Origin: Phallusia mammillata
Taxonomy: Eukaryota
NCBI GenBank assembly: GCA_965637545.1
Contig: OZ281495.1
Coordinates: forward strand, 2,728,001-2,792,000
DNA: 64,000 nt
Reading direction: 5' to 3'
Part shown: positions 1 to 53,160 of the stretch, one piece after another
How the letters are laid out: every line of letters begins with the position of its first letter
Numbering within the stretch: position 1 is the stretch's first letter
Program-made: the position numbers and the translations under genes
The notes under the pieces: generated by a model
Seen by the model: the letters and a program-made list of their open reading frames with translations, nothing else
Told to the model about the DNA's origin: nothing
The model's database searches: none

Positions 1-288
1 AGGAAATACAGGATTGGATACAAACTTTGGTCGGTGAAGACAAAGAAATCGCAGAGCAACTCCAACTACTGATGAAGCGATGCTGGGATCAAGATCCAAC
101 AAAACGTCCTACAATGACTGAAATAAAAGAAGAATTGAAAACGCGTTTGGATAAGCAACAAACTACCAAGCTACTTTCTCAAGTTTTGACAACTCTGACT
201 CAAATGGATTTAGACGAGCAACCGCAAGTCAGCGAAAGTCGACGCGTCCCTCTTCACCATTTTTCACCCCGGTCCGGAAGTTTTCACG
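1..288 (+). CDS. 3' end of RIPK-like kinase exon (left-arm copy of unit 1)
   Basis: LMKRCWDQDPTKRPTM (kinase subdomain XI); phase-1 donor CAC G|gtaaat at 289. Confidence 0.9.
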
Positions 289-518
289 GTAAATTAATCG
301 GTCAATACATATAAATTTATTATAATAAGAAGTAACCCCGAGTAGAAGCAGATTTCCTTGCCCGAGACGCTTTGGAACTGGTAGTCAAAACAATTAAGTT
401 GAGAGATAATGTGACAATGTGATCTGTTATATTTCTTGGCGGTTCAGAAGTTACACAGTAACATAAAAAAATCTAAAGGTATTAAGTCGTTTTGTCATAT
501 CACCCATCTATATTTCAG

Positions 519-3500
519 TGCCCTTCACATCGGGTGGAACCGAAGGACGGTTAAGCGAAACAGCGGAGGGCGTACAAGAGTTGCCTTCTTCTCAGCAAGG
601 TAAAAAATCCTCCCAGAGTAAAAAAAAAATAGTAGGATTTAACAATGTCAATTGTTTTTTCGTATAAAACCTTCAGCATCCCCGTACTAGAACTAGGGTG
701 AGATGCTCAGTTTATGAAGCCACCTGACTACTCGCGAGGCCGCACTAACAATTTTGTGTAATGTAATCCCAAGGTTTGGTTCTTACAACGGCAAAACTAT
801 ACAGAGCGCACTTTTAGAGCTAAATGTCCGCAGGTCTTCCATTTCCGATCTGATCAATCAAAACTATTTTTCATTGATTAAACTTTGTTTTATTTGTCGT
901 AACATTGCTGTTTGTTCGATCGTTTTTTAAAACTTTTGAGATTTAAAAAAGGTCAATATAAAGCCGTAACAGCCCTCTGCCAGTTTGTTGTAAAGTCAAT
1001 ATTCGTCTTTTGGCAACCGAACGTCAAACAATTTCACTCGGTGCACAGACGATGTTTCAAATAAATCTTGGTTTTATTTCTCTCGGAAAGCAAGGCAAAT
1101 GTCTTCACTAAATAAAGATATCTATAAGCAATCAACTTTCAGGCCCCTCTACAACAAGTGCGGCCATAAAAAAGACAATTAAACCGATATATGAAGCACA
1201 AGTGGTACGGTCACCATCTTCTTCTCAACAAGGGGAAACTCCTACATCCAGGAAACCGCAGCAACTAGGTATGGGGTGGACAAAACGATAATGGAAATTC
1301 CGATAATTTAGAAAATCATTATAAATTTACCAGTTTTTGTTTTACCTACTTTAAGTCGCGGAACACTTGGCGCATATTAAAATCAATGTCACACTCAACC
1401 AATTGATAACGGACCCACGCAATTATATTTTTAATATTTCACGACGAATCTGTTTGTTACACAAAAATAAATGATGTAAATCACGAAGAAACATTCAAAC
1501 TGGTGATAGCGGAGAATTACTTTTATGAAAGAAAAGCTATTTCTGCCATTTGTGTTAAACTTTGAAAATCACTGCCTTAAACGACAGCAAACATGCGTTG
1601 CCAGTATGGTGGAAAGTCAATATTGGTTTAGCGGCAACTCGTATAACTTTACGAGGAAATAGGTCCGAAAATAAGTTATATATTTATTAAAATATGTATA
1701 GGCGAAAACAAAAATCATTGTAGGTAACACAATAGCACCAATACTTAACCAACAATGATTTATTGTCATTAGCATCAGCCGGCACCTCACAGAAAAACAA
1801 ACAATTGCCTTCTTATGAACAAGAAGAAACTCCAACTAGCAGCAATGCACAGCAATCGGGTATGAGATACGTTGGCTCGTAGGAACTTCTAGTTATTGAT
1901 AAACGTATTGTTACCAAGAATACTTATAGGCAGTGAGAAAAAAAACACATTTCACCCATTTGTTTGTTCAGACGCCATTAGAAACGATGACGAAAAATTC
2001 AACCCGTCCGTACAAAAGTTGATCGCCCGTTTCAACAGCATATCACCACAGCAACCTGCAGGTAACCAATTATGGACACGTAGAATCAAATAATTGGGAC
2101 TTGTGTGCTTGTTTTGAAGCTTATGACCTGACTAACGCAAATGTGTGTGAACGACCGCGATTATGCCTGAGCCGGTTTAAAGTTATTTCTCGTAACATCA
2201 ATAAACTTAGCTTTAGTTAAGCAACAACCTGACAGCTAAGCAGTTAGGATGCACGTAATTTCGTAACTGGGATCAACCCTCAAGCGTTTATTCAGATCAG
2301 TGATAACGGCGTAGTTATAACTAAATCACTAGGATCAGTCTTTTAAACGCGGTATACCAAACCAGCCGATCATTCCAAATGGCAAGGGCTCTGATGGGAC
2401 TCGAACCCACGACAGAGTCTTTCTTGGACTTGCAGGCAACAGTGCTTGTTTCGATATTTGACGGGCTTACCGCTGAACTTGTGAAGTTCAGTTGGTTCAT
2501 ATTATTCCACAAAGAGTCCAGATATCCAAAAAATAATAAATGAAGTAAATCGCGAACATTCAAACAGGTGATAGTGATTACTTTTCTAAAAAAGTTTTTC
2601 TGGTCCATTGTGTTAGAAGTACCAGGATATGAGATGCACATGTTACCTGGACCAAAAACGCTTTAAAGAACCTGCTAATCTAATATATTCTATGCCCCCT
2701 TCCAATTCTGTAAACGAAGCCCTGCGATTCTTCCTAACTTTTCCATAGGCTAATAAACATTGTATCAAGTTAAATATACTCTATATATAAAAAATAACCA
2801 CGACGTAAAGTCAAATCGATATAGCAAATCGACCTTTTACTAAACGTCCCTCAAAACACTGCTGTCTGCCGACCGGAGGTTGACCAATCATAGGCCAAAA
2901 CAATTTATGAAGGTTACTGGGCACATCCGAGAGCGACAACTATTTATGCGAAAAATCCAGCGAGGTAATGCGAAACAAAGCACGCAACTAGAACGAACAG
3001 TGAAATAAATCAAATAAGACAATATTACGTGAAAATCTGCAATTGAGAGAAATAAATAAATATGTAGCGCTGAAAAGGTAACATAAGGAAAACACATTGG
3101 AAGGTTACCTACAGAAAACCGTCCTACTTCCAGCAGCTCATCACCACAGCAACCTACAGGTAAACCAATCACAGATAAAGTCGTGCCCTACGCGTTTGAC
3201 ATGAAAACATAAGTTATTTACCAGGCAATTAATGTTTCGTCCTCATTTTAGTTCTGTGGGGTTTGACAGTGCCTTAAACATTATTTGCAGCCCGACAATG
3301 CATTGCTGTTGCAGTCGGAAAAGCGATATTGTGTTAAAAATATAATGATTGACGCGATTTTAGTAGGTACTAAGCAGAAGAAAAGCGTTAACGCTTTACA
3401 TGTGTGTTTGTAAAAGACTCGGTTTCGGACGAATCGCAAAAAATTATTCGGCCGAAACCGAATCTTTGCAAAAGTAGCCGATTCGGTTGAATAAATTCGA

Positions 3501-6500
3501 CAAACCGAATATTCGGTACATCTCCAGTTAACACGTTACAGAGCGCTAAAAAGTGTCGGGTACAGTTAGTGGATAGTGGCATTATGCATTGTATCTACAC
3601 TGTATTATGAGGTGTTATGTGACAGGCTCACAGGAAAGTGAATGTGGCGCAGAGTGGGAATCTCACGACTGAAAGGGGTCAGGGGGCTCGATGGAGGAAC
3701 CAGTCGCGAGGCTCTACAATCTAACCACCTGTGATTTATTGTTTTTGATAAAACTCGACTTAACATCATGTCTTATTGCGTAGTAACAAACTTTAACGTT
3801 TTATCATGAGCTAATATTCAAAAAAAGACAAAAAAATTAAATTTTCTAAAAAAGGTTTTTACCTCCGAAGTCAGTTTGTTTTGCCATCGTTTTCCACAAT
3901 TGTTGGTGCCCCAACCCGTTTGGCCCATAGAAGCTTGTTCATGTCCACTAGATATTGGCTGCACATGGTTCCAAAATCAATATCCTCATTATGATTCAAA
4001 ACTCTACAAACAAAAATTATAATTTAAAAATTTGGTCTTGACATTTGCTATTGATCGAGATGTTAAAATGGAATTCGTGAAAAATCTGTCTTACTGTAAA
4101 TCCCAAAAAACATTTTTTGTTAAACTATTTTGTTTTACTTGGAACATATTTCAACAACGTACTTTTCGTTTATCGTTTAATGGCAAATCGACTTAAAAAT
4201 ATTCGTCTTTATTGTGGTCAGATGTGGAGGTGTTACGACGAATGGAAGTTACTTATTCCTACGAACCAGGAAACGCCGATGAACTGCAATTGAAAGTTGG
4301 TGACATAATCGACGTGTATAATGATGTGGGTACCTATGGTTTAGTATTTATTGGATCCCAATGCTACATTTTCACTACAAAAATAAACAACACATAAAAA
4401 ATGTGAAATACCATGTTATAATGTACAACGTTACACCTATTTTGTAATAAAGCGATTAATGAGTCCACAAGACCAGTTTCTACAAAAACGGTTACACTAT
4501 GGGGGAACAATTATTTCTGATTGATGTAACATTGTTTGTCTTTTTTTACCAGTCAAGTGATTGGTCAAGTATTCTAAACAATGTTAATTTAAAAAATGTT
4601 TACCAGTTTCATGAACATGGGTAAATTCTTGGGTAAATTGGTAGAAAATAAAACTTTAGATAGGTTATAAAGCTTTTGTGTCAAACTTTTTCTGCTTGCA
4701 ATTACACAGGAGGAGGAAGGTTGGGCCAGAGGTCGATGCAACGGAAAGGAAGGAGTTTTTCCAACAAACTACGCCACCACTCTTGAGGAACTTGACTCAC
4801 CAACAACATCAGCAGCATCTCAAAACACTGAAGAATCAGCTCAAGAAGAAGCAAAAAAGGCAAGTAATTTACTGAAGTTAAATCCTTATGTTGGATTGTA
4901 GATTGGAAACCTACAACGGGCTTTTTATCTTAAAACTGTAATCTTGTTTGGAAGTTTATTAACTGTGCCATTTACATTGGGTCCTATAGTTTCAAATTCT
5001 GTTTAAAAGCCTGATTGTTTCTGTAGGAAGAAAGCTTCACCGTGTCCTTATAAATATTGCTGTTTATTAAATATTTTCGTTCAATCCTATATAGCTGTGG
5101 ACTTTTTTAGAGGTTAAACCAGATAGCGCAGTGTGAAGTGTTTTAAGGTCAGTCGTGGACACCGGTTAGATTACATTTGTTCCATTGCATGTAATGCTTA
5201 CTTATAAAGTGAACTTAAAAACAGATGTGGGAAAACTTTCGTTGTAATATATATTTTTATACCCAGATATTGGAAATCAAGGAAGTGAAAAATACAGGTA
5301 AGTGTAAGAGATGTATGGATAGAAATGAACGAAAGCGTTCATGAGAAAACGAATAATTTCCAAACGAGTAGAATGTTGGTGTACAGTTTTCATATCGTCG
5401 CCTGATTGACATTTTGATATAACACAACTTGACAACTATTTGATTTTCTTACTTTCATAAACTACAAAGCCTTTCACCAGGATAAACGAGGCCCTTATCA
5501 ATTTTTAAGTGCGACGAACCTTCCTACAGCATTATTCCATTTCTGATGAAAATTTCAAACTTTAATGTTTTGCTGAAAGTAGATTAGACGAGAAAATAGC
5601 AACAACATAAACTAGTCGATTTATATCTATTGGTTTCATTCCAGGGCTTACCGAACTTTAACTCGCCTTTATAATTTGTAAACGTTTTTAAACATACAGT
5701 AACCCGTCAGCGTAGGTTGGCCTTTTCGCTGTTATGAAGCTTACGCAGCCAACTCTCAACTGCACTTGCAACTGTTTAATATGTGGAGTCTTACGCACTA
5801 TATTTTAGTGGAAAGTTAATATTTGACAACTCAAACAAAATCAATCCGGCACTTCTTTAGCAAATAACCTATGTTTATAAGTAATATTCTTCTGTTACAA
5901 AACGAAACAATACAGTATAAAAGTGTCTAGTAGTAAACCACCAATATTTTAGTGCCCTCCACATCAGGTGACACCGAGGAACGATCAACCGAACCAACAG
6001 ATGGCGCAAAAGAGCATGTACAGTCATTTCCTCAACAAGGGGAGACTTCCACCAGCAGCAGCCCGCAGCAACTGGGTATAACATGCATTGACTGGTTGTA
6101 ACTTCTATCAATCGTATACCAATGCTGAAAGTTACATTGTTGAAAGTTTTCACCCTTTTTTGAAGAACAATTACAAAATCAAAAATAAATTTGATTTTGT
6201 TCAGATCCCACCAGACGTGGTTCCAAAGGACTGTTTACGACGGTACGAAAGTTTATCTCACGTTTGAACAGAAAATCACCACAACCACCAACAGGTAAAC
6301 TAATCACATTATGCACAAAATGATTGCAAATCGTGTGTTGACATTTAGCGCTTGACTTCTCAAATCACGATTTTTCGTTTTCATACTTAAGCCTCAACCA
6401 GTTCTGCAATAAAAATCCCGGTTTTTGCATCTGACATAGTAATATAAAGTTGTTTTCGTATTCAGCCTATAGTTAAAAATCGTATTTCAACAGTTTGGCA

Positions 6501-6858
6501 AAATATTACGTCATATCACACATTGCTAAGCTGCAAATCATTTTGTGAAAACAAATTCAAGTCGTTAAAAAGTAGCCAATAAATTAAGCTCACAAATAGT
6601 TATGTGGCCATAATTACACTGGGTAACTGGACAGTTTGTAACAAAACGTTTCTGTGTCTTTGTCACGTTGATAAAATAACTAAACACGACTGTAGGATAA
6701 ATTAAAGTCTATTTGTGAAACCACTTATATTTTAGTGCCTTCCACTTTAAACAACACCGAGGAACGATCAACCGAACCAACAGAGGGCGCCAATGAAGCA
6801 GAACAAACTTCTATCCAACAAGGGGAAATCCCCACCTCCAGCAACCAGCAACAACCAG
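519..6858 (+). CDS. Left-arm copy of unit 1 linker and SH3 exons (519-599, 1143-1268, 1773-1859, 1972-2061, 3115-3159, 4222-4325, 4710-4859, 5267-5297, 5953-6075, 6205-6294, 6736-6858); no TPR exon on this strand
   Basis: Mirror of the unit 1 exons; AG/GT (one GC) boundaries and open frames read by hand. Confidence 0.7.
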
Positions 6859-7877
6859 GTATGAGATACATTGAACCGTTACATTGCGTAGTTATGCCGG
6901 TAACGTTTGTTATAAATTTTTGCATTGAACCTTTAACTTCTGTTAAATAATGCCAGGGTGCGGAACTTTTTTGTTCGCGAGCAATTTGTATTCCACAATA
7001 ACTCGTTTATCACAGAGGTCGAATAGAAATTGAGTTTTAATCATGTTACCCCTATTTAAGCCTTAAACCGTTATAATTGGGGACCCCACTTTTTCCCTCA
7101 AGAAGTCGATGATTCCACATGTCAAGACGAGCAAAAACGTTCTTTTTCTAAGGTTGGCAATGAAATGTAAGCCACAAGCGTCCGCTGCCAGTTTGCTGGA
7201 AAGGCAATATTTGTGTAGCGACAACCAACACCTCAAAATATTTCACATAGTAAAAGGGCAGTTTGTCACAAAATCGTTGGTGTTAGTTATTACTTTAGAA
7301 ATAATTTAATACTATCTGGACAAAGAATTTCAATCTTGTAAGTTAATTTGACTTATGGTACACAATTCAACCTAGGTGAAACCACAGACAGCGGATGTTT
7401 TGACACATTATGTTCAATTAAATTGTGGTTTTAGGTTTGTTTGTAGCTACTTAAAAATTCTCGAGATGTGATTACCATGGCAACATTAGAAAATTGGCCA
7501 TAAGGTTTAAAAACTTCCCACCACACAGAAAACTCGCCACGCTAGTATATGAACCATTTAACTGTTTCCGCTACCTATCGTCCCAACAAACCGCGGAAAT
7601 CAAAAGCATGTCTTATTACCCACCAGAATTTGACAGACATTTAAAGGCCACCCAAAGTTTACCTTCCCCTCTTTTTTTATTTATGGGCTTTTGCATCGAC
7701 CTCTAGTGGCTAAGAAAAAAACAGGTTTTAAAAATCTTCCACTCACATCATCGATAATCACCAGCACAGCATTTCACGACCCGTTTCTAGCCGGATGGTT
7801 TTTCCACGACCCGTTTCTAGCCGGATGGTTTTAAGCCAATTTGGTTTCAGTGGCTAAATCCAAGCCGACTATGTTTA

Positions 7878-8247
7878 TGTCACCTTCAAACAATCCCATA
7901 ACCATTCACCATGGCTGTCATGTTTTGATTTTTATGTTGAATCTGTCCACATGTTTGCATATCTTTAACTTAAACACTTCTTTTGGGACCAAACCCAAAC
8001 ATTACTCTTTATCTTTAGTTGGTACTTGGTTGTCTACTTGCAAAAATACACAACTGAAATGAAATCAGTTGTGATTCGTGCTTCAAGCTTTGAACCAAGG
8101 GTCAACCATATATAAAGTGTAATGGTTTGGGTTGTGCTAAAAAAGAAGTGATAAAGTTAAAGATATGCAAACATGTGGACAGATTCAACATAAAAATCAA
8201 AACATGACAGCCATGGTGAATGGTTATGGGATTTTGTAAAGGTGACA
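7878..8247. mobile_element. Fold-back/MITE-like element, ~135-bp imperfect inverted arms (mirror copy 14644-15013)
   Basis: 7878-8011 is the reverse complement of 8111-8247 (outer ~90 bp near-perfect); no TSD identified. Confidence 0.7.
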
Positions 8248-8774
8248 CACAAAGTTGAAATTACTAGTGACTTATATACAGGCTCTATGTAACATACAAG
8301 CAAACACTGACATAAGTAACAACATTGTTTTTGTTTTATTTAAAATAATGCTGGTAATCACAGATGTTAATGTAATTGTTAAAGTACATTAAAATTCATG
8401 ACAAACACTAAAAACTTGTGTAGTAATAAAAAGGTGAAATGAAAATGACATGTTGAAACAATGGTATACATAAAAACAACAACAACAAAATTTGGTTATA
8501 TGTGTAAGAATTGGTGGAGGATGTGCACACAAAAAATGGCATATCAGACGCTTATGACAAATTGAGTAAATCACCTGCATTTGTAGTTTACTAAACATTG
8601 TGTGATGTACTAAGCTGGGCAACATACAGGGATATGCATAAAAATGGGTATTCCAAATAAAACATGTGATATAAAGCAACTGTACAAAAGTTCTACAATC
8701 CATACAAAGGACTTTCCATGTCAAAACACTTTCTCTAAAGAAAATTTCTTTTGCTTCTCTTTTTTCCTGTGTTT

Positions 8775-8974
8775 NNNNNNNNNNNNNNNNNNNNNNNNNN
8801 NNNNNNNNNNNNNNNNNNNNNNNNNNNNNNNNNNNNNNNNNNNNNNNNNNNNNNNNNNNNNNNNNNNNNNNNNNNNNNNNNNNNNNNNNNNNNNNNNNNN
8901 NNNNNNNNNNNNNNNNNNNNNNNNNNNNNNNNNNNNNNNNNNNNNNNNNNNNNNNNNNNNNNNNNNNNNNNNNN
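8775..8974. other. Scaffold gap (200 N)
   Basis: Run of exactly 200 N. Confidence 1.
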
Positions 8975-10017: not shown

Positions 10018-10778
10018 TCACTTGGTCAACTTCGCTTTGCTGTTTTGCAATTTCCTTTCACTTATTGCAATCAATTTTTCTCGTTGTTCCTCAGTTATAT
10101 CCTCCGCTGTTTTGTAAACTTCGATCGCTTTTGTGTAACATTCGATTGCTTCTTTGATTCGTGAAGTTGTCTCACAAACAGCACCAAGATTGTTCAACAA
10201 GTGACCGTAGATGTAATACTTTGAACTTTCATTCCCGAACTTTGTTTCCATAAGTTCAAGTCCAAGTTTTATTGTTGTTTCACTCGATGCAAAATCACCG
10301 ATGTGATGTTGACTCACTTCAATGTGATGCAAACACCGAACCTCCTTTTTACATCGAATTTTTTCATTTATTTGAAGGTCACGGATTTGCTGAACCATGT
10401 CACGCATCAGTGGGATCACGTGATCGCGCACGATTTCTATGTTTCTCGACTCCGAAGATGAATCGGAATTTTTCATCAAATGTTCGATTGTTTTTCGAAT
10501 TTCCATCGCACAACCCACTACACTTTTCGCTACAGCGGAGTCGGGATTTTTGTTTGCATAGAAATCTGCGGCAACGCTAAACAACAAAATGGCTTCCAAA
10601 TATTCGCCGTCATCTCTAAATTTTGTGGCTTTTTCTTTCAGGTTTTCTGCAGTGACCCCTGGTTGACCAGTGATTGACCTTGAAAGTTGTTGTTTTGTCG
10701 TTTTTGCTTCGTCATATTTTTTTGTTTTTAATAAATCAACATAATTATCAATACGTTGATTGAATTCGTCAGTTTGAT
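10018..10778 (-). CDS. Unit 1 terminal exon, TPR-like helical domain
   Basis: Acceptor ttctctgcag|AT, phase 1; 59 open codons upstream of the ORF-track start; TPR motif YGHLLNNLGAVC...EAIECYTKAIEV. Confidence 0.88.
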
Positions 10779-13700: not shown

Positions 13701-16700
13701 TTAGCCAGTTGTTTTGTTATTTGTAGGATGTGGATTAACTGCAAAGGACCGACTTGTATGATGAATATAAAAGTGAGTTTGCAAAGGTGGCTTTCTGTTT
13801 GAGAAGAAAGTGTTTTGACACGTGCATTTTTCTGGTATGTATGTTCATTTAACCTAGTTGTTCTGTGATACATATCTAGGATAACGGTAATTGGTGATTC
13901 TGTTCATTTTTTAGATTTATTGGAGATTATTTCCAAATATTACAGTCTATACAGCTCCAAATTGAAACACAAATATTATCAATTAATTCTAGGATAATAA
14001 AGTACAAAATGCAAGCCAGTTCTAAAGAGTGTCCCTTGTCATTGTAAAAATATTCAGTCACAATCTTCCAACTTTACTTTTTAATAAAAAACTGAAACTG
14101 TAATTTGTTTTATTTTAAACACAGGAAAAAAGAGAAGCAAAAGAAATTTTCTTTAGAGAAAGTGTTTTGACATGGAAAGTCCTTTGTATGGATTGTAGAA
14201 CTTTTGTACAGTTGCTTTATATCACATGTTTTATTTGGAATACCCATTTTTATGCATATCCCTGTATGTTGCCCAGCTTAGTACATCACACAATGTTTAG
14301 TAAACTACAAATGCAGGTGATTTACTCAATTTGTCATAAGCGTCTGATATGCCATTTTTTGTGTGCACATCCTCCACCAATTCTTACACATATAACCAAA
14401 TTTTGTTGTTGTTGTTTTTATGTATACCATTGTTTCAACATGTCATTTTCATTTCACCTTTTTATTACTACACAAGTTTTTAGTGTTTGTCATGAATTTT
14501 AATGTACTTTAACAATTACATTAACATCTGTGATTACCAGCATTATTTTAAATAAAACAAAAACAATGTTGTTACTTATGTCAGTGTTTGCTTGTATGTT
14601 ACATAGAGCCTGTATATAAGTCACTAGTAATTTCAACTTTGTGTGTCACCTTTACAAAATCCCATAACCATTCACCATGGCTGTCATGTTTTGATTTTTA
14701 TGTTGAATCTGTCCACATGTTTGCATATCTTTAACTTTATCACTTCTTTTTTAGCACAACCCAAACCATTACACTTTATATATGGTTGACCCTTGGTTCA
14801 AAGCTTGAAGCACGAATCACAACTGATTTCATTTCAGTTGTGTATTTTTGCAAGTAGACAACCAAGTACCAACTAAAGATAAAGAGTAATGTTTGGGTTT
14901 GGTCCCAAAAGAAGTGTTTAAGTTAAAGATATGCAAACATGTGGACAGATTCAACATAAAAATCAAAACATGACAGCCATGGTGAATGGTTATGGGATTG
15001 TTTGAAGGTGACATAAACATAGTCGGCTTGGATTTAGCCACTGAAACCAAATTGGCTTAAAACCATCCGGCTAGAAACGGGTCGTGGAAAAACCATCCGG
15101 CTAGAAACGGGTCGTGAAATGCTGTGCTGGTGATTATCGATGATGTGAGTGGAAGATTTTTAAAACCTGTTTTTTTCTTAGCCACTAGAGGTCGATGCAA
15201 AAGCCCATAAATAAAAAAAGAGGGGAAGGTAAACTTTGGGTGGCCTTTAAATGTCTGTCAAATTCTGGTGGGTAATAAGACATGCTTTTGATTTCCGCGG
15301 TTTGTTGGGACGATAGGTAGCGGAAACAGTTAAATGGTTCATATACTAGCGTGGCGAGTTTTCTGTGTGGTGGGAAGTTTTTAAACCTTATGGCCAATTT
15401 TCTAATGTTGCCATGGTAATCACATCTCGAGAATTTTTAAGTAGCTACAAACAAACCTAAAACCACAATTTAATTGAACATAATGTGTCAAAACATCCGC
15501 TGTCTGTGGTTTCACCTAGGTTGAATTGTGTACCATAAGTCAAATTAACTTACAAGATTGAAATTCTTTGTCCAGATAGTATTAAATTATTTCTAAAGTA
15601 ATAACTAACACCAACGATTTTGTGACAAACTGCCCTTTTACTATGTGAAATATTTTGAGGTGTTGGTTGTCGCTACACAAATATTGCCTTTCCAGCAAAC
15701 TGGCAGCGGACGCTTGTGGCTTACATTTCATTGCCAACCTTAGAAAAAGAACGTTTTTGCTCGTCTTGACATGTGGAATCATCGACTTCTTGAGGGAAAA
15801 AGTGGGGTCCCCAATTATAACGGTTTAAGGCTTAAATAGGGGTAACATGATTAAAACTCAATTTCTATTCGACCTCTGTGATAAACGAGTTATTGTGGAA
15901 TACAAATTGCTCGCGAACAAAAAAGTTCCGCACCCTGGCATTATTTAACAGAAGTTAAAGGTTCAATGCAAAAATTTATAACAAACGTTACCGGCATAAC
16001 TACGCAATGTAACGGTTCAATGTATCTCATACCTGGTTGTTGCTGGTTGCTGGAGGTGGGGATTTCCCCTTGTTGGATAGAAGTTTGTTCTGCTTCATTG
16101 GCGCCCTCTGTTGGTTCGGTTGATCGTTCCTCGGTGTTGTTTAAAGTGGAAGGCACTAAAATATAAGTGGTTTCACAAATAGACTTTAATTTATCCTACA
16201 GTCGTGTTTAGTTATTTTATCAACGTGACAAAGACACAGAAACGTTTTGTTACAAACTGTCCAGTTACCCAGTGTAATTATGGCCACATAACTATTTGTG
16301 AGCTTAATTTATTGGCTACTTTTTAACGACTTGAATTTGTTTTCACAAAATGATTTGCAGCTTAGCAATGTGTGATATGACGTAATATTTTGCCAAACTG
16401 TTGAAATACGATTTTTAACTATAGGCTGAATACGAAAACAACTTTATATTACTATGTCAGATGCAAAAACCGGGATTTTTATTGCAGAACTGGTTGAGGC
16501 TTAAGTATGAAAACGAAAAATCGTGATTTGAGAAGTCAAGCGCTAAATGTCAACACACGATTTGCAATCATTTTGTGCATAATGTGATTAGTTTACCTGT
16601 TGGTGGTTGTGGTGATTTTCTGTTCAAACGTGAGATAAACTTTCGTACCGTCGTAAACAGTCCTTTGGAACCACGTCTGGTGGGATCTGAACAAAATCAA

Positions 16701-19700
16701 ATTTATTTTTGATTTTGTAATTGTTCTTCAAAAAAGGGTGAAAACTTTCAACAATGTAACTTTCAGCATTGGTATACGATTGATAGAAGTTACAACCAGT
16801 CAATGCATGTTATACCCAGTTGCTGCGGGCTGCTGCTGGTGGAAGTCTCCCCTTGTTGAGGAAATGACTGTACATGCTCTTTTGCGCCATCTGTTGGTTC
16901 GGTTGATCGTTCCTCGGTGTCACCTGATGTGGAGGGCACTAAAATATTGGTGGTTTACTACTAGACACTTTTATACTGTATTGTTTCGTTTTGTAACAGA
17001 AGAATATTACTTATAAACATAGGTTATTTGCTAAAGAAGTGCCGGATTGATTTTGTTTGAGTTGTCAAATATTAACTTTCCACTAAAATATAGTGCGTAA
17101 GACTCCACATATTAAACAGTTGCAAGTGCAGTTGAGAGTTGGCTGCGTAAGCTTCATAACAGCGAAAAGGCCAACCTACGCTGACGGGTTACTGTATGTT
17201 TAAAAACGTTTACAAATTATAAAGGCGAGTTAAAGTTCGGTAAGCCCTGGAATGAAACCAATAGATATAAATCGACTAGTTTATGTTGTTGCTATTTTCT
17301 CGTCTAATCTACTTTCAGCAAAACATTAAAGTTTGAAATTTTCATCAGAAATGGAATAATGCTGTAGGAAGGTTCGTCGCACTTAAAAATTGATAAGGGC
17401 CTCGTTTATCCTGGTGAAAGGCTTTGTAGTTTATGAAAGTAAGAAAATCAAATAGTTGTCAAGTTGTGTTATATCAAAATGTCAATCAGGCGACGATATG
17501 AAAACTGTACACCAACATTCTACTCGTTTGGAAATTATTCGTTTTCTCATGAACGCTTTCGTTCATTTCTATCCATACATCTCTTACACTTACCTGTATT
17601 TTTCACTTCCTTGATTTCCAATATCTGGGTATAAAAATATATATTACAACGAAAGTTTTCCCACATCTGTTTTTAAGTTCACTTTATAAGTAAGCATTAC
17701 ATGCAATGGAACAAATGTAATCTAACCGGTGTCCACGACTGACCTTAAAACACTTCACACTGCGCTATCTGGTTTAACCTCTAAAAAAGTCCACAGCTAT
17801 ATAGGATTGAACGAAAATATTTAATAAACAGCAATATTTATAAGGACACGGTGAAGCTTTCTTCCTACAGAAACAATCAGGCTTTTAAACAGAATTTGAA
17901 ACTATAGGACCCAATGTAAATGGCACAGTTAATAAACTTCCAAACAAGATTACAGTTTTAAGATAAAAAGCCCGTTGTAGGTTTCCAATCTACAATCCAA
18001 CATAAGGATTTAACTTCAGTAAATTACTTGCCTTTTTTGCTTCTTCTTGAGCTGATTCTTCAGTGTTTTGAGATGCTGCTGATGTTGTTGGTGAGTCAAG
18101 TTCCTCAAGAGTGGTGGCGTAGTTTGTTGGAAAAACTCCTTCCTTTCCGTTGCATCGACCTCTGGCCCAACCTTCCTCCTCCTGTGTAATTGCAAGCAGA
18201 AAAAGTTTGACACAAAAGCTTTATAACCTATCTAAAGTTTTATTTTCTACCAATTTACCCAAGAATTTACCCATGTTCATGAAACTGGTAAACATTTTTT
18301 AAATTAACATTGTTTAGAATACTTGACCAATCACTTGACTGGTAAAAAAAGACAAACAATGTTACATCAATCAGAAATAATTGTTCCCCCATAGTGTAAC
18401 CGTTTTTGTAGAAACTGGTCTTGTGGACTCATTAATCGCTTTATTACAAAATAGGTGTAACGTTGTACATTATAACATGGTATTTCACATTTTTTATGTG
18501 TTGTTTATTTTTGTAGTGAAAATGTAGCATTGGGATCCAATAAATACTAAACCATAGGTACCCACATCATTATACACGTCGATTATGTCACCAACTTTCA
18601 ATTGCAGTTCATCGGCGTTTCCTGGTTCGTAGGAATAAGTAACTTCCATTCGTCGTAACACCTCCACATCTGACCACAATAAAGACGAATATTTTTAAGT
18701 CGATTTGCCATTAAACGATAAACGAAAAGTACGTTGTTGAAATATGTTCCAAGTAAAACAAAATAGTTTAACAAAAAATGTTTTTTGGGATTTACAGTAA
18801 GACAGATTTTTCACGAATTCCATTTTAACATCTCGATCAATAGCAAATGTCAAGACCAAATTTTTAAATTATAATTTTTGTTTGTAGAGTTTTGAATCAT
18901 AATGAGGATATTGATTTTGGAACCATGTGCAGCCAATATCTAGTGGACATGAACAAGCTTCTATGGGCCAAACGGGTTGGGGCACCAACAATTGTGGAAA
19001 ACGATGGCAAAACAAACTGACTTCGGAGGTAAAAACCTTTTTTAGAAAATTTAATTTTTTTGTCTTTTTTTGAATATTAGCTCATGATAAAACGTTAAAG
19101 TTTGTTACTACGCAATAAGACATGATGTTAAGTCGAGTTTTATCAAAAACAATAAATCACAGGTGGTTAGATTGTAGAGCCTCGCGACTGGTTCCTCCAT
19201 CGAGCCCCCTGACCCCTTTCAGTCGTGAGATTCCCACTCTGCGCCACATTCACTTTCCTGTGAGCCTGTCACATAACACCTCATAATACAGTGTAGATAC
19301 AATGCATAATGCCACTATCCACTAACTGTACCCGACACTTTTTAGCGCTCTGTAACGTGTTAACTGGAGATGTACCGAATATTCGGTTTGTCGAATTTAT
19401 TCAACCGAATCGGCTACTTTTGCAAAGATTCGGTTTCGGCCGAATAATTTTTTGCGATTCGTCCGAAACCGAGTCTTTTACAAACACACATGTAAAGCGT
19501 TAACGCTTTTCTTCTGCTTAGTACCTACTAAAATCGCGTCAATCATTATATTTTTAACACAATATCGCTTTTCCGACTGCAACAGCAATGCATTGTCGGG
19601 CTGCAAATAATGTTTAAGGCACTGTCAAACCCCACAGAACTAAAATGAGGACGAAACATTAATTGCCTGGTAAATAACTTATGTTTTCATGTCAAACGCG

Positions 19701-22700
19701 TAGGGCACGACTTTATCTGTGATTGGTTTACCTGTAGGTTGCTGTGGTGATGAGCTGCTGGAAGTAGGACGGTTTTCTGTAGGTAACCTTCCAATGTGTT
19801 TTCCTTATGTTACCTTTTCAGCGCTACATATTTATTTATTTCTCTCAATTGCAGATTTTCACGTAATATTGTCTTATTTGATTTATTTCACTGTTCGTTC
19901 TAGTTGCGTGCTTTGTTTCGCATTACCTCGCTGGATTTTTCGCATAAATAGTTGTCGCTCTCGGATGTGCCCAGTAACCTTCATAAATTGTTTTGGCCTA
20001 TGATTGGTCAACCTCCGGTCGGCAGACAGCAGTGTTTTGAGGGACGTTTAGTAAAAGGTCGATTTGCTATATCGATTTGACTTTACGTCGTGGTTATTTT
20101 TTATATATAGAGTATATTTAACTTGATACAATGTTTATTAGCCTATGGAAAAGTTAGGAAGAATCGCAGGGCTTCGTTTACAGAATTGGAAGGGGGCATA
20201 GAATATATTAGATTAGCAGGTTCTTTAAAGCGTTTTTGGTCCAGGTAACATGTGCATCTCATATCCTGGTACTTCTAACACAATGGACCAGAAAAACTTT
20301 TTTAGAAAAGTAATCACTATCACCTGTTTGAATGTTCGCGATTTACTTCATTTATTATTTTTTGGATATCTGGACTCTTTGTGGAATAATATGAACCAAC
20401 TGAACTTCACAAGTTCAGCGGTAAGCCCGTCAAATATCGAAACAAGCACTGTTGCCTGCAAGTCCAAGAAAGACTCTGTCGTGGGTTCGAGTCCCATCAG
20501 AGCCCTTGCCATTTGGAATGATCGGCTGGTTTGGTATACCGCGTTTAAAAGACTGATCCTAGTGATTTAGTTATAACTACGCCGTTATCACTGATCTGAA
20601 TAAACGCTTGAGGGTTGATCCCAGTTACGAAATTACGTGCATCCTAACTGCTTAGCTGTCAGGTTGTTGCTTAACTAAAGCTAAGTTTATTGATGTTACG
20701 AGAAATAACTTTAAACCGGCTCAGGCATAATCGCGGTCGTTCACACACATTTGCGTTAGTCAGGTCATAAGCTTCAAAACAAGCACACAAGTCCCAATTA
20801 TTTGATTCTACGTGTCCATAATTGGTTACCTGCAGGTTGCTGTGGTGATATGCTGTTGAAACGGGCGATCAACTTTTGTACGGACGGGTTGAATTTTTCG
20901 TCATCGTTTCTAATGGCGTCTGAACAAACAAATGGGTGAAATGTGTTTTTTTTCTCACTGCCTATAAGTATTCTTGGTAACAATACGTTTATCAATAACT
21001 AGAAGTTCCTACGAGCCAACGTATCTCATACCCGATTGCTGTGCATTGCTGCTAGTTGGAGTTTCTTCTTGTTCATAAGAAGGCAATTGTTTGTTTTTCT
21101 GTGAGGTGCCGGCTGATGCTAATGACAATAAATCATTGTTGGTTAAGTATTGGTGCTATTGTGTTACCTACAATGATTTTTGTTTTCGCCTATACATATT
21201 TTAATAAATATATAACTTATTTTCGGACCTATTTCCTCGTAAAGTTATACGAGTTGCCGCTAAACCAATATTGACTTTCCACCATACTGGCAACGCATGT
21301 TTGCTGTCGTTTAAGGCAGTGATTTTCAAAGTTTAACACAAATGGCAGAAATAGCTTTTCTTTCATAAAAGTAATTCTCCGCTATCACCACTTTGAATGT
21401 TTCTTCGTGATTTACATCATTTATTTTTGTGTAACAAACAGATTCGTCGTGAAATATTAAAAATATAATTGCGTGGGTCCGTTATCAATTGGTTGAGTGT
21501 GACATTGATTTTAATATGCGCCAAGTGTTCCGCGACTTAAAGTAGGTAAAACAAAAACTGGTAAATTTATAATGATTTTCTAAATTATCGGAATTTCCAT
21601 TATCGTTTTGTCCACCCCATACCTAGTTGCTGCGGTTTCCTGGATGTAGGAGTTTCCCCTTGTTGAGAAGAAGATGGTGACCGTACCACTTGTGCTTCAT
21701 ATATCGGTTTAATTGTCTTTTTTATGGCCGCACTTGTTGTAGAGGGGCCTGAAAGTTGATTGCTTATAGATATCTTTATTTAGTGAAGACATTTGCCTTG
21801 CTTTCCGAGAGAAATAAAACCAAGATTTATTTGAAACATCGTCTGTGCACCGAGTGAAATTGTTTGACGTTCGGTTGCCAAAAGACGAATATTGACTTTA
21901 CAACAAACTGGCAGAGGGCTGTTACGGCTTTATATTGACCTTTTTTAAATCTCAAAAGTTTTAAAAAACGATCGAACAAACAGCAATGTTACGACAAATA
22001 AAACAAAGTTTAATCAATGAAAAATAGTTTTGATTGATCAGATCGGAAATGGAAGACCTGCGGACATTTAGCTCTAAAAGTGCGCTCTGTATAGTTTTGC
22101 CGTTGTAAGAACCAAACCTTGGGATTACATTACACAAAATTGTTAGTGCGGCCTCGCGAGTAGTCAGGTGGCTTCATAAACTGAGCATCTCACCCTAGTT
22201 CTAGTACGGGGATGCTGAAGGTTTTATACGAAAAAACAATTGACATTGTTAAATCCTACTATTTTTTTTTTACTCTGGGAGGATTTTTTACCTTGCTGAG
22301 AAGAAGGCAACTCTTGTACGCCCTCCGCTGTTTCGCTTAACCGTCCTTCGGTTCCACCCGATGTGAAGGGCACTGAAATATAGATGGGTGATATGACAAA
22401 ACGACTTAATACCTTTAGATTTTTTTATGTTACTGTGTAACTTCTGAACCGCCAAGAAATATAACAGATCACATTGTCACATTATCTCTCAACTTAATTG
22501 TTTTGACTACCAGTTCCAAAGCGTCTCGGGCAAGGAAATCTGCTTCTACTCGGGGTTACTTCTTATTATAATAAATTTATATGTATTGACCGATTAATTT
22601 ACCGTGAAAACTTCCGGACCGGGGTGAAAAATGGTGAAGAGGGACGCGTCGACTTTCGCTGACTTGCGGTTGCTCGTCTAAATCCATTTGAGTCAGAGTT

Positions 22701-25138
22701 GTCAAAACTTGAGAAAGTAGCTTGGTAGTTTGTTGCTTATCCAAACGCGTTTTCAATTCTTCTTTTATTTCAGTCATTGTAGGACGTTTTGTTGGATCTT
22801 GATCCCAGCATCGCTTCATCAGTAGTTGGAGTTGCTCTGCGATTTCTTTGTCTTCACCGACCAAAGTTTGTATCCAATCCTGTATTTCCTGGCAGTCTGG
22901 TCTTTTTCCTTTCTTGATTTCCTCTAATAACTCTCTTCGCTCTTCCTGAGTCAGACGTGGATACGGAGCTTTACGATTTAGTGCCCAGTGGATGATCATT
23001 GAAAATGCGTAAACATCATGTTGCTTCCTAGGCTTCATGCTGAGGTCCTTCAGTTTTTCAGGAGCTGTGTAATAGGGAGTGAATTGAGGCCTTTCTTTCT
23101 TGGTTCGTGCCAAAGGATTCACATTTGCCGAAATACTGTAAGTTGCCAGTTCGGCCCCGCCAAAATCGATTATTTTGCAATGGAGCTCTTTAGAAAACAT
23201 AACATTTTCGGGTTTTAAGTCCTGATGAATTAAACGTTTATCAGGTAAATTGTGACAGAAAGCCATTGCTGATGCTACTTCGTATAAAATACGAACACGC
23301 AAAGCAAGGCCCAGTTCTTTTGATGTATCCTGTAGTAGCTCTTTGAGATTCCCGCCTTTGTAATATGCCATCACAATTCCTATTGCGAAAGTCCATTTGA
23401 CATAGCCAAAAACCCGAACGACATTTTCATGATCTGCTTTCTGCAAGTGTTCCATTTCTTCTTTGATTCTAAAAAGAGAGTTTTTTTTTCAGCTGCATGT
23501 TACGTTTTGTGCATGTAATAACGCAAAGCAAAGATCTCGGTAGGACAGGTGAGGTGGTATGTCCCCTCAACAAAATGATTGAAAACAATTTATCAAACGT
23601 CACACAACCCGCATTCCTCGCTTTTTAATCTTCGGTTTTTAGCAATGATTAAAAATGTCGCATCTCGCACCACACATCAGGAAATCAAGCAGGCCAACCA
23701 AGATTAGTAGTCACGATGGCTGGCGCGCTTTGCTGGTTAATTCATCTAAGATTGCGCAGTAGTTTGTCATTATCGTGTAGTCCATGGAATTAATGCCGCT
23801 GGACGAAGCTTTTGAGGTATAACTAGTTTTGTAAGTCCACACATATACCAGATACACCAGCACAATATATAAAATTAGCAAATGTTTTCAAAATTGCCAT
23901 TTTTTAAAATTTAATTTCGATTTGTTACCTCATTATCATATTTTACAAATTGTTGTGAAGTCATCAACACAAAATTAATCTTAAATAGTACGTTTCTTCC
24001 ATATTTGCGATAGATTTGCACCGCTCTATATAACAAATCGTATAACTTACGTTTTTTCAAGCCGCGCCTTTTCTTGGGTTCCACCAGATACTTCAAACAC
24101 TTTGATGGCAACTTCTTGCTTTAACCCATTGTGGTATCCGAATATAACATCCCCGAAGCCTCCTGAACCGGCCACGAATTTGTCAAGGTTACATGTGATG
24201 TCACCACAATCCAATTCCCGTAACTGTGACACAGAAAGATTATGTTTTTACCCCTGATGTCCAACGTATATTTCATTGAGGTCCAACCAAGCCATACAAC
24301 TAACTTAACCAATGTTATTCAAAACTTTGTTCAACCGGTTTGCAAACGAAAAGTTTTTGATTCAAATCCCGTTGGGCTTTAGTAATTGCTGAGTAATTTA
24401 AAACCCAGTTTTTTACATTGCAAGATTTGTTTTTGAAACAAATTCTCTGCTACAAATTTAGGTTTATCAGACAAGTCAGAGCGAGTTGAGTAAAACATAG
24501 TTATCGACTAGTTTCAGAGTGTTAAAATGGTTTATATAGAAAAAGAAAGCGGATTATGTCAGTAAGTCCTCCTAAACTTAACTCTTAGCTAAACATTATC
24601 AGTCACTAGAAAGCACAAAAGGGCCTTAGAGCTACTAACACAGGACCTTACATCACAGGCCTACTAATTTCCAGTAAAGTGCGCACTCAAAAATAATTCC
24701 GGCAGAGAGCGCACTCAAAAATCTTAAATGCACTTTGTAAAAAAAATGCTGACGGTTAGGGCTATGGGGGTTGGTCTGAGGTTTCACAATAACACTGAAA
24801 TCAGCCCAAAAACCCAGTTTATGTTAAATTCATTCATTTAACCCTACCCCAGACGCAATTGTAATTTGAATAACTGCGCTCTTTTCACCATCGATCGGTA
24901 TTTAAGAAACTTTTTGTGGTGTGAGTTTCTGTGTTAGTAGATCCTCCCAAAATAGGAAGGAACGAAAATACTTTAGGATTAAAAGAAAAATTTAAAACAA
25001 ATTTATTTGAATCCCGGTAGTCTAATTTGAAACTATACTTTTTCATACGGTGGACAAATAAAACCTGTTTAGTGTAATGAACAAACAAACAAAAGAAAAA
25101 AATTTGTAGAAGTTGCTTACCTCTTTCGGCGAAGTCAT
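10018..25138 (-). CDS. Unit 1 gene model: RIPK-like kinase - linker repeats - SH3 - linker repeats - TPR-like domain (~955 aa, 15 exons)
   Basis: Exons 25121-25138, 24051-24223, 22603-23468, 22292-22372, 21623-21748, 21032-21118, 20830-20919, 19732-19776, 18566-18669, 18032-18181, 17594-17624, 16816-16938, 16597-16686, 16033-16155, 10018-10778 sum to 2868 nt = 956 codons in one open frame with compatible phases. Confidence 0.72.
11958..12260. repeat. CCCGAA/GGCCCG-rich interspersed repeat (MITE-like)
   Basis: Clustered cccgaa/ggcccg motifs at 11970-12040 and 12190-12255. Confidence 0.35.
12337..15120. mobile_element. Decayed DNA-transposon-like material in the last intron of unit 1
   Basis: Starts near CACTAGAAAAAA; AGCC/GGCT-rich repeats at 12350-12720 and 15030-15120 (30-bp tandem pair); exon-like fragment NFCTVALYHMFYLEYP at 14199-14246. 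Far end not found. Confidence 0.3.
13270..13661. mobile_element. MULE-like MITE with ~120-bp TIRs and 8-bp TSD
   Basis: TIRs GGGTGACACTAAAACGCTGAATGGGCGGGA...; aaattttt duplicated at 13262-13269 and 13662-13669. Confidence 0.8.
16033..16155 (-). CDS. Unit 1 type-A linker exon (VPSTLNNTEERSTEP...QQP)
   Basis: tttag|TG ... G|gtatga, 123 nt, phase 1-1. Confidence 0.8.
16597..16686 (-). CDS. Unit 1 type-B linker exon (DPTRRGSKGLFTTVRKFISRLNRKSPQPPT)
   Basis: ttcag|AT ... G|gtaaac, 90 nt, phase 1-1. Confidence 0.8.
16816..16938 (-). CDS. Unit 1 type-A linker exon (VPSTSGDTEERSTEP...PQQL)
   Basis: tttag|TG ... G|gtataa, 123 nt, phase 1-1. Confidence 0.8.
17594..17624 (-). CDS. Unit 1 31-nt micro-exon (ILEIKEVKNT), phase 0 to 1
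   Basis: acccag|ATA ... ACA G|gtaagt; restores phase after the SH3 exon. Confidence 0.55.
18032..18181 (-). CDS. SH3 domain, second exon (EEEGWARGRCNGKEGVFPTNY...)
   Basis: acacag|GAG; SH3 core GW..G...G.FP.NY; ends AAG|gcaagt (GC donor) or 4 nt later at a GT. Confidence 0.85.
18566..18669 (-). CDS. SH3 domain, first exon (DVEVLRRMEVTYSYEPGNADELQLKVGDIIDVYND)
   Basis: gtcag|AT ... GAT|gtgggt; SH3 RT-loop motif Y.Y.P.N.DEL.L..GD.I. Confidence 0.88.
19368..19710. mobile_element. Truncated copy of a CCGAATATTCGG-type MITE (fuller copy at 57547-58006; mirror 3181-3523)
   Basis: Aligns by eye to 57547-57690 and 57880-57925. Confidence 0.65.
19732..19776 (-). CDS. Unit 1 short linker exon (ENRPTSSSSSPQQPT)
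   Basis: cctacag|AA ... G|gtaaac, 45 nt, phase 1-1; 3' half matches type-B exons. Confidence 0.6.
20830..20919 (-). CDS. Unit 1 type-B linker exon (DAIRNDDEKFNPSVQKLIARFNSISPQQPA)
   Basis: gttcag|AC ... G|gtaacc, 90 nt, phase 1-1. Confidence 0.82.
21032..21118 (-). CDS. Unit 1 A-related linker exon (ASAGTSQKNKQLPSYEQEETPTSSNAQQS)
   Basis: cattag|CA ... G|gtatga, 87 nt, phase 1-1. Confidence 0.65.
21623..21748 (-). CDS. Unit 1 A-related linker exon (GPSTTSAAIKK...SRKPQQL)
   Basis: tttcag|GC ... G|gtatgg, 126 nt, phase 1-1. Confidence 0.7.
22292..22372 (-). CDS. Unit 1 shortened type-A linker exon (VPFTSGGTEGRLSE...SQQ)
   Basis: tttcag|TG ... G|gtaaaa, 81 nt; the paralogous downstream donor is lost (gattta). 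Confidence 0.65.
22603..23468 (-). CDS. Unit 1 main kinase exon, RIPK-like TKL kinase
   Basis: EEMEHL (alphaC), IHQDLKPEN, IIDFG, YTAPE, DVYAFS, LMKRCW..DP.KRP; ttttag|A phase 2, G|gtaaat phase 1. Confidence 0.93.
24051..24223 (-). CDS. Unit 1 kinase N-lobe exon
   Basis: cacag|TTA; GSGGFG and VAIK; AC|gtaagt; 173 nt, as in units 2 and 4. Confidence 0.92.
25121..25138 (-). CDS. Unit 1 start exon (MTSPKE)
   Basis: ATG ACT TCG CCG AAA GAG|gtaagc, phase 0 fits the next exon; paralog MTSANE at 46657-46674. Confidence 0.7.
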
Positions 25139-38610: not shown

Positions 38611-39365
38611 TTACTTGTTCAACTTTGCCTTGCATATTTGCAAACCCCTCTTAATTTTTGCAATCTCTTCTCCTCGTTGTTCCTCAGTTAAATCCTCCGC
38701 TGTTTTGTAGGCTTCGATTGCTTTTGTGAAATATTCGATTGCTTCTTTGAATTGTGAAGTGTTACCGCAAACAACACCAAGATTGCTCAACAAGTAACCG
38801 TAGATTGAATACTTTAAACTTTCATTCCCAAACTTTGTTTCCATAAGTTCAAGTCCTAGTTTTATTGTTGTTTCCCTCGATGCCAAATCCCCGATGTAAT
38901 ATTGACTCAGTTCAATGGAATGCAAACACCAAACCTCCATTTCACTTCGAATTTTTCCGTTTATTTGAAGGCAACGGATTTGCTGAGTCATGTCACGCAT
39001 TAGTGAGATCACGTGATCGCGCACGATGTCTTTGTTTCTCGTCTTTAAAGATGAATCAGAATTTTTCATCAAAAGTTTGATTGTGTCGCGAATTCCCTCT
39101 GCACATATCGCTACACTTTTCGCTACTGCAAAGCCGGGATTTTTCTTAACATGGAAATCTGCGGCAATGCTGAAAAATAGAATTGCTTGCAAATATTTGC
39201 TGTCATTTTTAAATTTTGTGGCTTTTTTTTCCAGGTTTTCTGCAGTGACCCCTGGTTGACCTGTGATTGACCTTGAAAGTCGTTGTTTTGTTGTTTTTGC
39301 TTTGTCATACTTTTCTGTTTTTAATAAATCAATATAGTTTTGAATGCGTTGGTTGAATTCGCCGT
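38611..39365 (-). CDS. Unit 2 terminal TPR-like exon
   Basis: ttttgcag|AC, phase 1; 57 open codons upstream of the ORF-track start. Confidence 0.88.
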
Positions 39366-51319: not shown

Positions 51320-52104
51320 TCACTGTTTTTGCAGCAAATTTGTAATTTTGTCCAACTTTGCTTTGTTGGATTTTAAATACCTTTCACCTTTTTCAATTCT
51401 TTCTTCTTTATCTTCCTCGGTTAAATCTCTCACTGATCTATAAACTTCGATTGCTTTTGTGTAATTTGCGTCTGCTTCTTCGAGTCGTGAAGTTTCCTCG
51501 CAAACAAAACCAAGATAGTTCAACAAGGTACCATAGATTCGATACTTCGAACATTCATTGCCAAATTTTGTTTCCATAAGTTCAAGTCCACGTTTTATTG
51601 TTGTTTCGCTCGATGTCCAATCCCTGATGTAATATTGACTCCAGGCAATACAACCCAAACAGCGAACCTCCCATTCGCATCGAATTTTTTGGTTAATTAG
51701 AAGATCGCTTATTTGCCGAGTCATGTCGTGCATCAGTGGAATCACGTGATTGCGCACAATTTTTTTGTTTTTTGACTTAAAAGTTGAATCAGATTTTTCC
51801 ATCAGAAGTTCTATTGTATCTCGAATTTCAAATGCACGGACAGTTACACTTCTCGCTACAGTAAGGTGAGGATTTTTCTTCGCATAGAAATCTGCGGCAA
51901 TGCGAAAAAACAAAATGGCTTTCAAATATTTGCCGTCATATCGAAGTTTTTTAGCTTTTCTGATTAAGTTATCCGCGGTGAGCCCTGGTAGTCCTTCGAT
52001 TGATTTTAAAAGTTGTTTTTTAATCTTTTCTGCTTTTCCAGCGTTTCCAGATATTAATAACTCAAAATAACTGTGTATGCGTTGGTTGAAGTCGACATTT
52101 CCAT
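51320..52104 (-). CDS. Unit 3 terminal TPR-like exon (most divergent copy)
   Basis: tttctcag|AT, phase 1; open for 261 codons to the stop. Confidence 0.85.
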
Positions 52105-52249: not shown

Positions 52250-52339
52250 CTGTGGGTTGCTGTGGAGATGTGCTACTGAAACTGGCAATTAGTTTTAATG
52301 ATGCGATGGAGCGTACCTCGTCATCGTGTTCGATTGGAT
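52250..52339 (-). CDS. Unit 3 type-B linker exon
   Basis: tttag|AT ... G|gtaaac, 90 nt. Confidence 0.75.
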
Positions 52340-52467: not shown

Positions 52468-52578
52468 CAGGTTGCTGTTGTTGTGTTTTGAAGGTGGGAA
52501 ATTCCTCTCGTGTCTTTACGAGCTTACGTGCGCCTTTTGTTGGCTTAGTGGATTGTTTCTCACCTGATGTGGAGGGCA
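52468..52578 (-). CDS. Unit 3 type-A linker exon
   Basis: tttag|TG ... G|gtataa, 111 nt. Confidence 0.75.
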
Positions 52579-53073: not shown

Positions 53074-53160
53074 CTGCAGGTTGCTGTGGTGATGTACTGT
53101 CGAAACGAGCGATAAACTGTTGTAGTGATGTGATGGAACGCTTCTTGGTGACGATTGGAT
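53074..53160 (-). pseudogene. Type-B exon with destroyed donor (GT>AT)
   Basis: DPIVTKKRSITSLQQFIARFDSTSPQQPA G|ataaac instead of gtaaac. Confidence 0.7.

Follow-up and report, generated by a model that had tools for sequence, protein, structure and literature searches.

The middle of an immune-type protein kinase gene at this locus, between the kinase exon and the last exon, is divided into a series of very small and mutually similar exons. The stretch analysed here, called the window, comprises 64,000 nucleotides (nt) of the sea squirt Phallusia mammillata (GenBank assembly GCA_965637545.1, contig OZ281495.1, positions 2,728,001 to 2,792,000 of the forward strand). It has ~37% G+C and a clear eukaryotic character. 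Its minus strand contains four tandem units of one very large gene family, whose members are predicted to consist of a RIPK1-like protein kinase joined to a C-terminal helical TPR-like domain. The linker of unit 1 spans 16033-22372 (minus strand) and has eight small exons between the kinase exon and the terminal exon. These exons probably originated by tandem duplication of two ancestral symmetric exons, and the linker that they encode would serve as a disordered tether within the kinase-TPR gene.

All searches were run exon by exon, without a joined spliced model. The small exons belong to two homologous classes, of which class A reads (V)PSTS..QQGE..PTSS..QQ and class B reads (D)P..SPQQP. 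All 20 class A and B exons of units 1-4 have AG and GT borders, a length that is a multiple of three (3n), and phase 1-1, meaning that the first two bases finish a codon and one base is left over at the 3' end; the exon at 53074-53160 achieves this through a shifted GT. The lengths are 45, 81, 87, 90 (six exons), 93 (three exons), 111, 120, 123 (four exons), and 126 nt (two exons). To obtain nine lengths from two ancestral exons, at least seven independent length changes are needed, and all of them kept the frame. By our own reckoning, the chance that seven or more changes would all remain 3n is about (1/3)^7 = 5e-4, and the pattern is thus unlikely to be a product of chance.

The same phase 1 is present at the kinase donors of units 1, 2, and 4 and at the four terminal-exon acceptors. 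The kinase exon of unit 1 ends in ...SGSFH plus one G, with the phase-1 donor CAC G/GTAAAT at 22603 (the slash marks the exon border). Unit 1 alone among the four units has a two-exon SH3 cassette, placed between its linker exons 5 and 6, whose exons preserve the frame only when both are present (phases 1-0 and 0-1). A sense junction codon results from each of the 55 forward donor-to-acceptor pairs of unit 1, and no stop occurs at any of these junctions because the donor exons all end in G (A in the case of the SH3 exon). A preliminary description of this DNA had proposed a linker of duplicated symmetric phase-1 modules, in two classes of 45-126 nt over 16033-22372, with 8, 2, 4, and 6 copies in units 1-4, respectively. 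Each of these points was reproduced, and the homology of the modules extends to their splice flanks. The proposal that each kinase donor can be joined in frame to every later module or TPR acceptor also stands on sequence grounds, since all of them are in phase 1. The related statement that any subset of exons keeps the frame is correct for the 20 A/B exons and incorrect for the members of the SH3 pair and for a 61-nt copy at 61089-61149.

The common descent of the modules is visible when 11 copies of class A and 12 of class B are aligned together with their flanks. The acceptors common to the copies are TTTTTAG/TGCC in class A and TTTAG/ATCC in class B, and the common donors are CAG/GTATGAGATACATTGA and CAG/GTAAACCAA, respectively. 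The mean pairwise identity drops from 0.61-0.83 at the exon ends to 0.51-0.69 over the initial 20 bases of the intron, and to 0.25-0.39 at greater distance. Likeness that is confined to the exon and ~20 nt of its flanks indicates that the copies are old and have been retained as working exons; both the frame and the splice sites have been under selection. Repeated tandem duplication of the two ancestral exons would have generated the copies of classes A and B, followed by truncation or decay of some of them. Because every copy is phase 1-1 and 3n, copies can come and go without ever disturbing either kinase or tail, and the tether length could be altered many times in evolution without harm because all of its pieces are symmetric. 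In addition to the exon ends, ~17 intron bases past the class A donor (GTATGAGATRCATTGAA) are as conserved as the exon, with an identity of 0.69 (e.g., 16016-16032, 41374-41390, and 61644-61660). This segment may control splicing, or it may be left over from once-coding sequence.

The same arrangement recurs throughout the assembly. The outcome is a gene model for an almost unannotated sea-squirt family, with at least 147 tail-exon matches, at least 134 kinase matches scored among 335 candidates, and four fragmentary proteins in the public databases, all from P. mammillata. A literature search found nothing on this kinase-linker-TPR family. Within the window, a tblastn search with its class A and B peptides recovered all their relatives, and each of these matches was inspected for AG...GT borders and an open frame. 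Across the genome, class A has at least 150 matches, stop-free in 149 of the 150 listed, and class B has 93, all stop-free. Nearly all family matches cluster on contig C2, at 0.7-1.6 and 2.6-4.1 Mb, alongside kinase and TPR exons. Units were reconstructed only by ordering the match coordinates, and the family and module counts are lower bounds in which short or partial modules are missed (6 rather than 8 in unit 1). This ordering yields 50 kinase-to-tail units with 0-10 recognisable modules each, two or three being the commonest, and the first module after the kinase is of class A wherever any module is detected. Further units are without a detected kinase among the kinase matches listed. Modules were rarely reached in the 1.5 kb that precede each of 27 distinct TPR exons. 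The number of modules differs between paralogs, with exons of the kinase-tail linker freely gained and lost, and this variation appears to be a property of the whole family. In the subfamily at 0.7-1.6 Mb of C2, the kinase matches lie inside open frames of 388-626 codons that also hold the first linker modules, which suggests very short stop-free introns or loss of the kinase-linker intron.

The use of the modules in a paralog protein is seen in P0153 (P. mammillata, 515 amino acids, UniRef/nr), which has the order kinase tail - A - x - B - A' - B - TPR tail. Its kinase tail ends in ...RTGRFE and is followed by a class A module, V-PSTTS...QQGEIPTSSRSQQP, that is 56% identical to exon 16033-16155. 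After this first A come D-S..., then D-...SSKSPQQH (class B), a partial A, ...SSTSPQQPA (class B), and the tail. The junction residues V and D agree with the prediction from the split codons G/TG and G/AT. The series of modules and the junction residues together demonstrate that at least one family member splices modules of both classes one after another. Over its first 74 residues, P0153 has 99% identity with G000:C2:723751-723975, and the modules detected at that locus each appear once and in the same order in the protein, with none skipped. P0001, another of the four proteins, and P0153 match the assembly at 97% and 99%, respectively. The protein searches returned no full kinase-linker-TPR model, and P0153 was the one informative protein among their results.

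The flanking domains place the linker in a RIPK-type protein. The solved structures nearest to the unit 1 kinase are those of RIPK1 (E 2.6e-30), followed by RIPK4, RIPK2, and RIPK3. No RHIM and no death or CARD domain was found 3' of the kinase, where Pfam detects only SH3 and a weak TPR. The tail is a single open terminal exon, 761 nt long in unit 1. Several canonical 34-residue TPR motifs above the Pfam thresholds were looked for in the tail and were not found; its open reading frame (ORF) of 193 amino acids has one motif at residues 134-163, with a TPR_1 score of 27.3 bits against a cut-off of 27.8, and PDB matches of the tail are limited to this motif. TPR-like would therefore be the safe wording.

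The module region would constitute the middle, or intermediate, part of the protein between the kinase and the TPR-like tail. The linker is composed of 15.5% S, 11.6% P, 11.1% Q, and 10.3% T, with 85% disorder-promoting residues, and a Pfam search of the linker matched no family. Such an S/P/Q/T-rich peptide would act as a flexible tether with the repeated short motifs PSTS...QQGE and SPQQP. Linker length would then vary mainly in evolution, between genes, and the modules within one gene would mostly be spliced constitutively, with some cassette skipping being possible.

Several observations weigh against this account. The linker peptide is most likely flexible and disordered, a prediction for which composition is the sole basis. 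Between units 2 and 4, the linker exons are 0.80-0.81 identical and the neighbouring introns 0.80-0.85, and the ratio of nonsynonymous to synonymous substitution (dN/dS) in the linker is 0.4-0.7, calculated from few sites; together these values indicate weak constraint on the linker peptide sequence. The RNA-like runs X3, X6, and X7 over 16800-22799 give no contig on any linker exon, and at the kinase end one run reaches an RNA depth of only 1.67, a value that could stem from a paralog of 94% identity. P0153 is only 66-94% identical to the best locus over its middle and tail, with 66-90% for the middle, and this protein may come from another allele or paralog, or may be a chimeric transcript model. 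A search of sequencing runs from the same species found words of the locus in two DNA-like runs and nearly none in the RNA-like runs. The apparent joints in DNA run X2 were not read as haplotype differences; their sides are 20-35 nt long and link similar exon ends or repeats.

Exon duplication of this kind is sound but ordinary, and belongs to a known type of process. An excess of phase 1-1 exons in metazoan genes is established, and whether conserved disordered regions follow the exon rule was not tested in the work that summarises it (PMC6547436). The modules described here resemble the symmetric exons of exon shuffling in that they are small, homologous, tandem, phase 1-1, and 3n. In contrast to classic exon shuffling, which concerns folded extracellular modules, they encode short low-complexity peptides in a cytoplasmic-type kinase. 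The PEVK region of titin consists of many short duplicated exons that encode a proline-rich flexible segment, and differential splicing of its repeats is documented. The linker shares with it the short duplicated exons, the flexible proline-rich segment, and a length that varies between gene copies; on the other hand, the sequences are unrelated and differential splicing is documented in titin only. The intermediate domain of vertebrate RIPK1 and RIPK3 is likewise disordered, and it too connects a kinase of RIPK type with an interaction domain at the C-terminus. However, it has no repeated exons and contains the RHIM core (I/V)Q(I/V/L/C)G, whereas the linker modules read IQQG, PQQG, or SQQG and lack the hydrophobic third residue, as compared by eye only. 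Moreover, the C-terminal domain here is TPR-like and is no death domain. As the evidence stands, the locus is a tidy instance of duplicated exons within a disordered region; real isoform diversity or tail swapping would make it an unusual route to diversify an immune-type kinase repertoire.

Among the alternatives, regulated cassette-exon skipping survives best, and we regard it as possible but distinctly less probable than a mostly constitutive tether. Here, subsets of A/B exons within one gene would give isoforms of differing tether length or motif number, which corresponds to the tunable spacer of the preliminary description. Symmetric 3n exons are over-represented among cassette exons, all A/B modules are 3n and phase 1-1 with no junction creating a stop, and the conserved ~17 nt past the class A donor could be the control element for such splicing. 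The transcript side argues differently: runs X3, X6, and X7 contain no RNA junction at the locus, and the sole transcript-derived family member, P0153, carries each module of its locus in unchanged order. The frame would also be lost if one SH3 exon or the 61-nt relic of unit 4 were handled on its own.

Another alternative, which we consider rather doubtful, is that the linker is a motif array and not a spacer. SPQQP, with its PxxP core, and PSTS..QQGE would act as docking or phosphorylation sites whose copy number sets the valency, and the SH3 domain captured by unit 1 might bind PxxP motifs of the same gene. The position of an SH3 domain inside the unit 1 linker fits this idea, and class B conservation peaks at the 3' end ..S-SPQQP, where S24 is invariant, P25 and Q26 are nearly so, and the last 20 nt have an identity of 0.83. 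This conserved end coincides with the donor splice site, so its conservation may instead serve splicing, and the dN/dS of 0.4-0.7 speaks for weak constraint and against an array of binding sites.

It is unlikely that the units of the window are a silent and recently dead array whose apparent exons are no more than open frames passed on by inheritance. Every unit retains intact frames for kinase, linker, and TPR exons, every length change is a multiple of three, the splice-site flanks are conserved while the introns are randomised, and the class A matches across the genome are stop-free in 149 of the 150 listed. On the side of a relic stand the missing RNA contigs on the linker exons in runs X3, X6, and X7, the four decayed modules and one lost donor, and the near-neutral evolution between units 2 and 4.

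Very improbable is cross-unit splicing, which had been put forward together with the exon anatomy. In this process, minus-strand read-through would allow a kinase donor to be joined to the linker or TPR exons of a downstream unit, for example the unit 4 kinase to unit 3. The phase 1 common to all donors and acceptors would permit it; unit 3, which has a linker and a tail without a kinase, is situated 3.4 kb downstream of the unit 4 stop codon, and unit 4 has only a weak ATTAAA 314 nt past its stop. Against it, there is no RNA support in runs X3, X6, and X7, AATAAA occurs 75-145 nt past the stop codons of units 1 and 2, and units 1, 2, and 4 are predicted to be complete genes, each with its own kinase and tail. 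Other units without a detected kinase also exist, among the kinase matches listed. In the protocadherin and UGT1A loci, every variable exon is transcribed from a promoter of its own and spliced to a single constant set. Cross-unit splicing, if present, would resemble these loci in combining one shared part with alternative neighbouring cassettes; unlike them, the window has three complete genes among its four units, and only unit 3 lacks a kinase. Equally improbable is the combined scheme in which A/B exons are used combinatorially and read-through kinases are spliced onto the next unit's linker and tail, turning an array of >100 genes into a much larger kinase-tether-sensor repertoire with a logic comparable to that of clustered protocadherins or Dscam.

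Table 1. Positions of the kinase, linker, SH3, and tail exons of the four units, of decayed module copies, and of subfamily loci (window positions unless a contig is given)
Feature	Position	Strand	Length (nt)	Phase	Remarks
Unit 1 main kinase exon, RIPK1-like	22603..23470	-			Upstream border approximate; Pfam Pkinase 6.7e-35
Unit 1 linker exon 1, class A	22292..22372	-	81	1-1	Ends early at QQG; alternative donor 22274 gives 99 nt
Unit 1 linker exon 2, class A	21623..21748	-	126	1-1	
Unit 1 linker exon 3, class A	21032..21118	-	87	1-1	Divergent 5' part; weaker acceptor cattag/CA
Unit 1 linker exon 4, class B	20830..20919	-	90	1-1	
Unit 1 linker exon 5, class B	19732..19776	-	45	1-1	3' part only; least certain exon
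SH3 exon 1	18566..18669	-	104	1 in / 0 out	Pfam SH3_1 positions 3-27, E 1.9e-5
SH3 exon 2 and acidic tail	18028..18181	-	154	0 in / 1 out	Pfam SH3_1/SH3_2 C-terminal part
Unit 1 linker exon 6, class A	16816..16938	-	123	1-1	
Unit 1 linker exon 7, class B	16597..16686	-	90	1-1	
Unit 1 linker exon 8, class A	16033..16155	-	123	1-1	
Unit 1 terminal exon, helical TPR-like tail	10018..10778	-	761		Phase-1 acceptor ttgtttctctgcag/AT; AATAAA 75 nt past stop
Unit 2 kinase	41677-42582	-			
Unit 2 linker exon, class A	41391-41513	-	123		
Unit 2 linker exon, class B	40873-40962	-	90		
Unit 2 decayed B-like copy	40647-40739	-			Acceptor TAG>TAT
Unit 2 decayed A copy	40228-40330	-			Without AG; contains stops
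Unit 2 tail	38611-39365	-			
Unit 3 linker exon, class B	54913-55005	-	93		
Unit 3 linker exon, class B	53041/53074-53160	-	120		Canonical donor GT>AT; GT 33 nt further on keeps exon usable (120 nt)
Unit 3 linker exon, class A	52468-52578	-	111		
Unit 3 linker exon, class B	52250-52339	-	90		
Unit 3 tail	51320-52104	-			
Unit 4 kinase	62804-63703	-			
Unit 4 linker exon, class A	62510-62632	-	123		
Unit 4 linker exon, class B	62287-62379	-	93		
Unit 4 linker exon, class A	61661-61786	-	126		
Unit 4 linker exon, class B	61434-61523	-	90		
Unit 4 decayed A copy	61089-61149	-	61		3' half gone; frame-breaking
Unit 4 linker exon, class B	60916-61005	-	90		
Unit 4 linker exon, B-like	60687-60779	-	93		
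Unit 4 tail	58431-59191	-			
Subfamily loci with kinase and modules in one frame	G000:C2:694614, 723115, 1183167, 1409637, 1463531, 1541735, 1556779				

The SH3 cassette of unit 1 has a counterpart among RNA contigs. Contigs from three runs match 18121-18181 at 90% identity and start exactly at 18181; the SH3-matching contigs extend upstream into a homologue of the end of SH3 exon 1, which supports the phase-0 junction. They were rejected as transcripts of unit 1, since an identity of 90% and a continuation into unlike sequence indicate that they derive from an expressed related SH3 gene elsewhere. A high-copy repeat at 19200-19800 occupies part of the intron that separates the SH3 cassette from linker exon 5; the word depth in DNA runs is 50-100x as high there as in adjacent bins, and many short RNA-like contigs align to the repeat. 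These contigs were also rejected as evidence of linker transcription because of the high-copy repeat. No confirmation was obtained for a tRNA-derived short interspersed element suspected near 20400-20500.

Over 40247-40872 and 60287-60915, units 2 and 4 share 93-96% identity, compared with 80-85% elsewhere, a pattern that resembles a recent gene-conversion tract. In the tract at 40247-40872, the acceptor of the B-like module of unit 2 is destroyed by one of the few differences.

Unit 1 is itself part of an inverted duplication. Positions 1..8774 of the window (plus strand) are the reverse complement of 14117-22890, with 99.989% identity and one mismatch; this copy carries the whole unit 1 linker and abuts a 200-N gap at 8775-8974. 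Across the genome, matches are mirrored about C2:2739444 (window ~11445) for ~90 kb on either side. The two arms differ by a 336-nt indel, in which window 60245-60580 is missing from the left-arm copy L022. More 100% copies of unit 1 are present at C2:3.18 Mb and on contig C28. The inverted repeat may be an artefact of scaffolding or duplication, or else a palindrome of very recent origin.

The database proteins have further features of their own. P0001, P0002, and P0153 share an identical stretch of 43 residues (MKNSSDLFSKLKNREIVRNHVIPLMRDM...) and diverge afterwards, which points to chimeric transcript models or gene conversion among paralogs. Exact look-ups of P0001 and P0004 returned no contigs. 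P0004 (P. mammillata, 506 amino acids) has a TPR-like tail that is 67% identical and no kinase; its N-terminal part is cysteine-rich and is accompanied by a hydrophobic segment resembling a membrane span. This architecture indicates that the tail is a module common to different gene architectures.

Two further ORFs lie between the units. An ORF of 313 amino acids at 49784-50725 (minus strand), between units 2 and 3, contains a GIY-YIG motif (Pfam E 6.1e-5) and probably belongs to a Penelope-like element. Between units 1 and 2, an ORF at 34786-35256 (plus strand) resembles, by eye, a reverse-transcriptase fragment.

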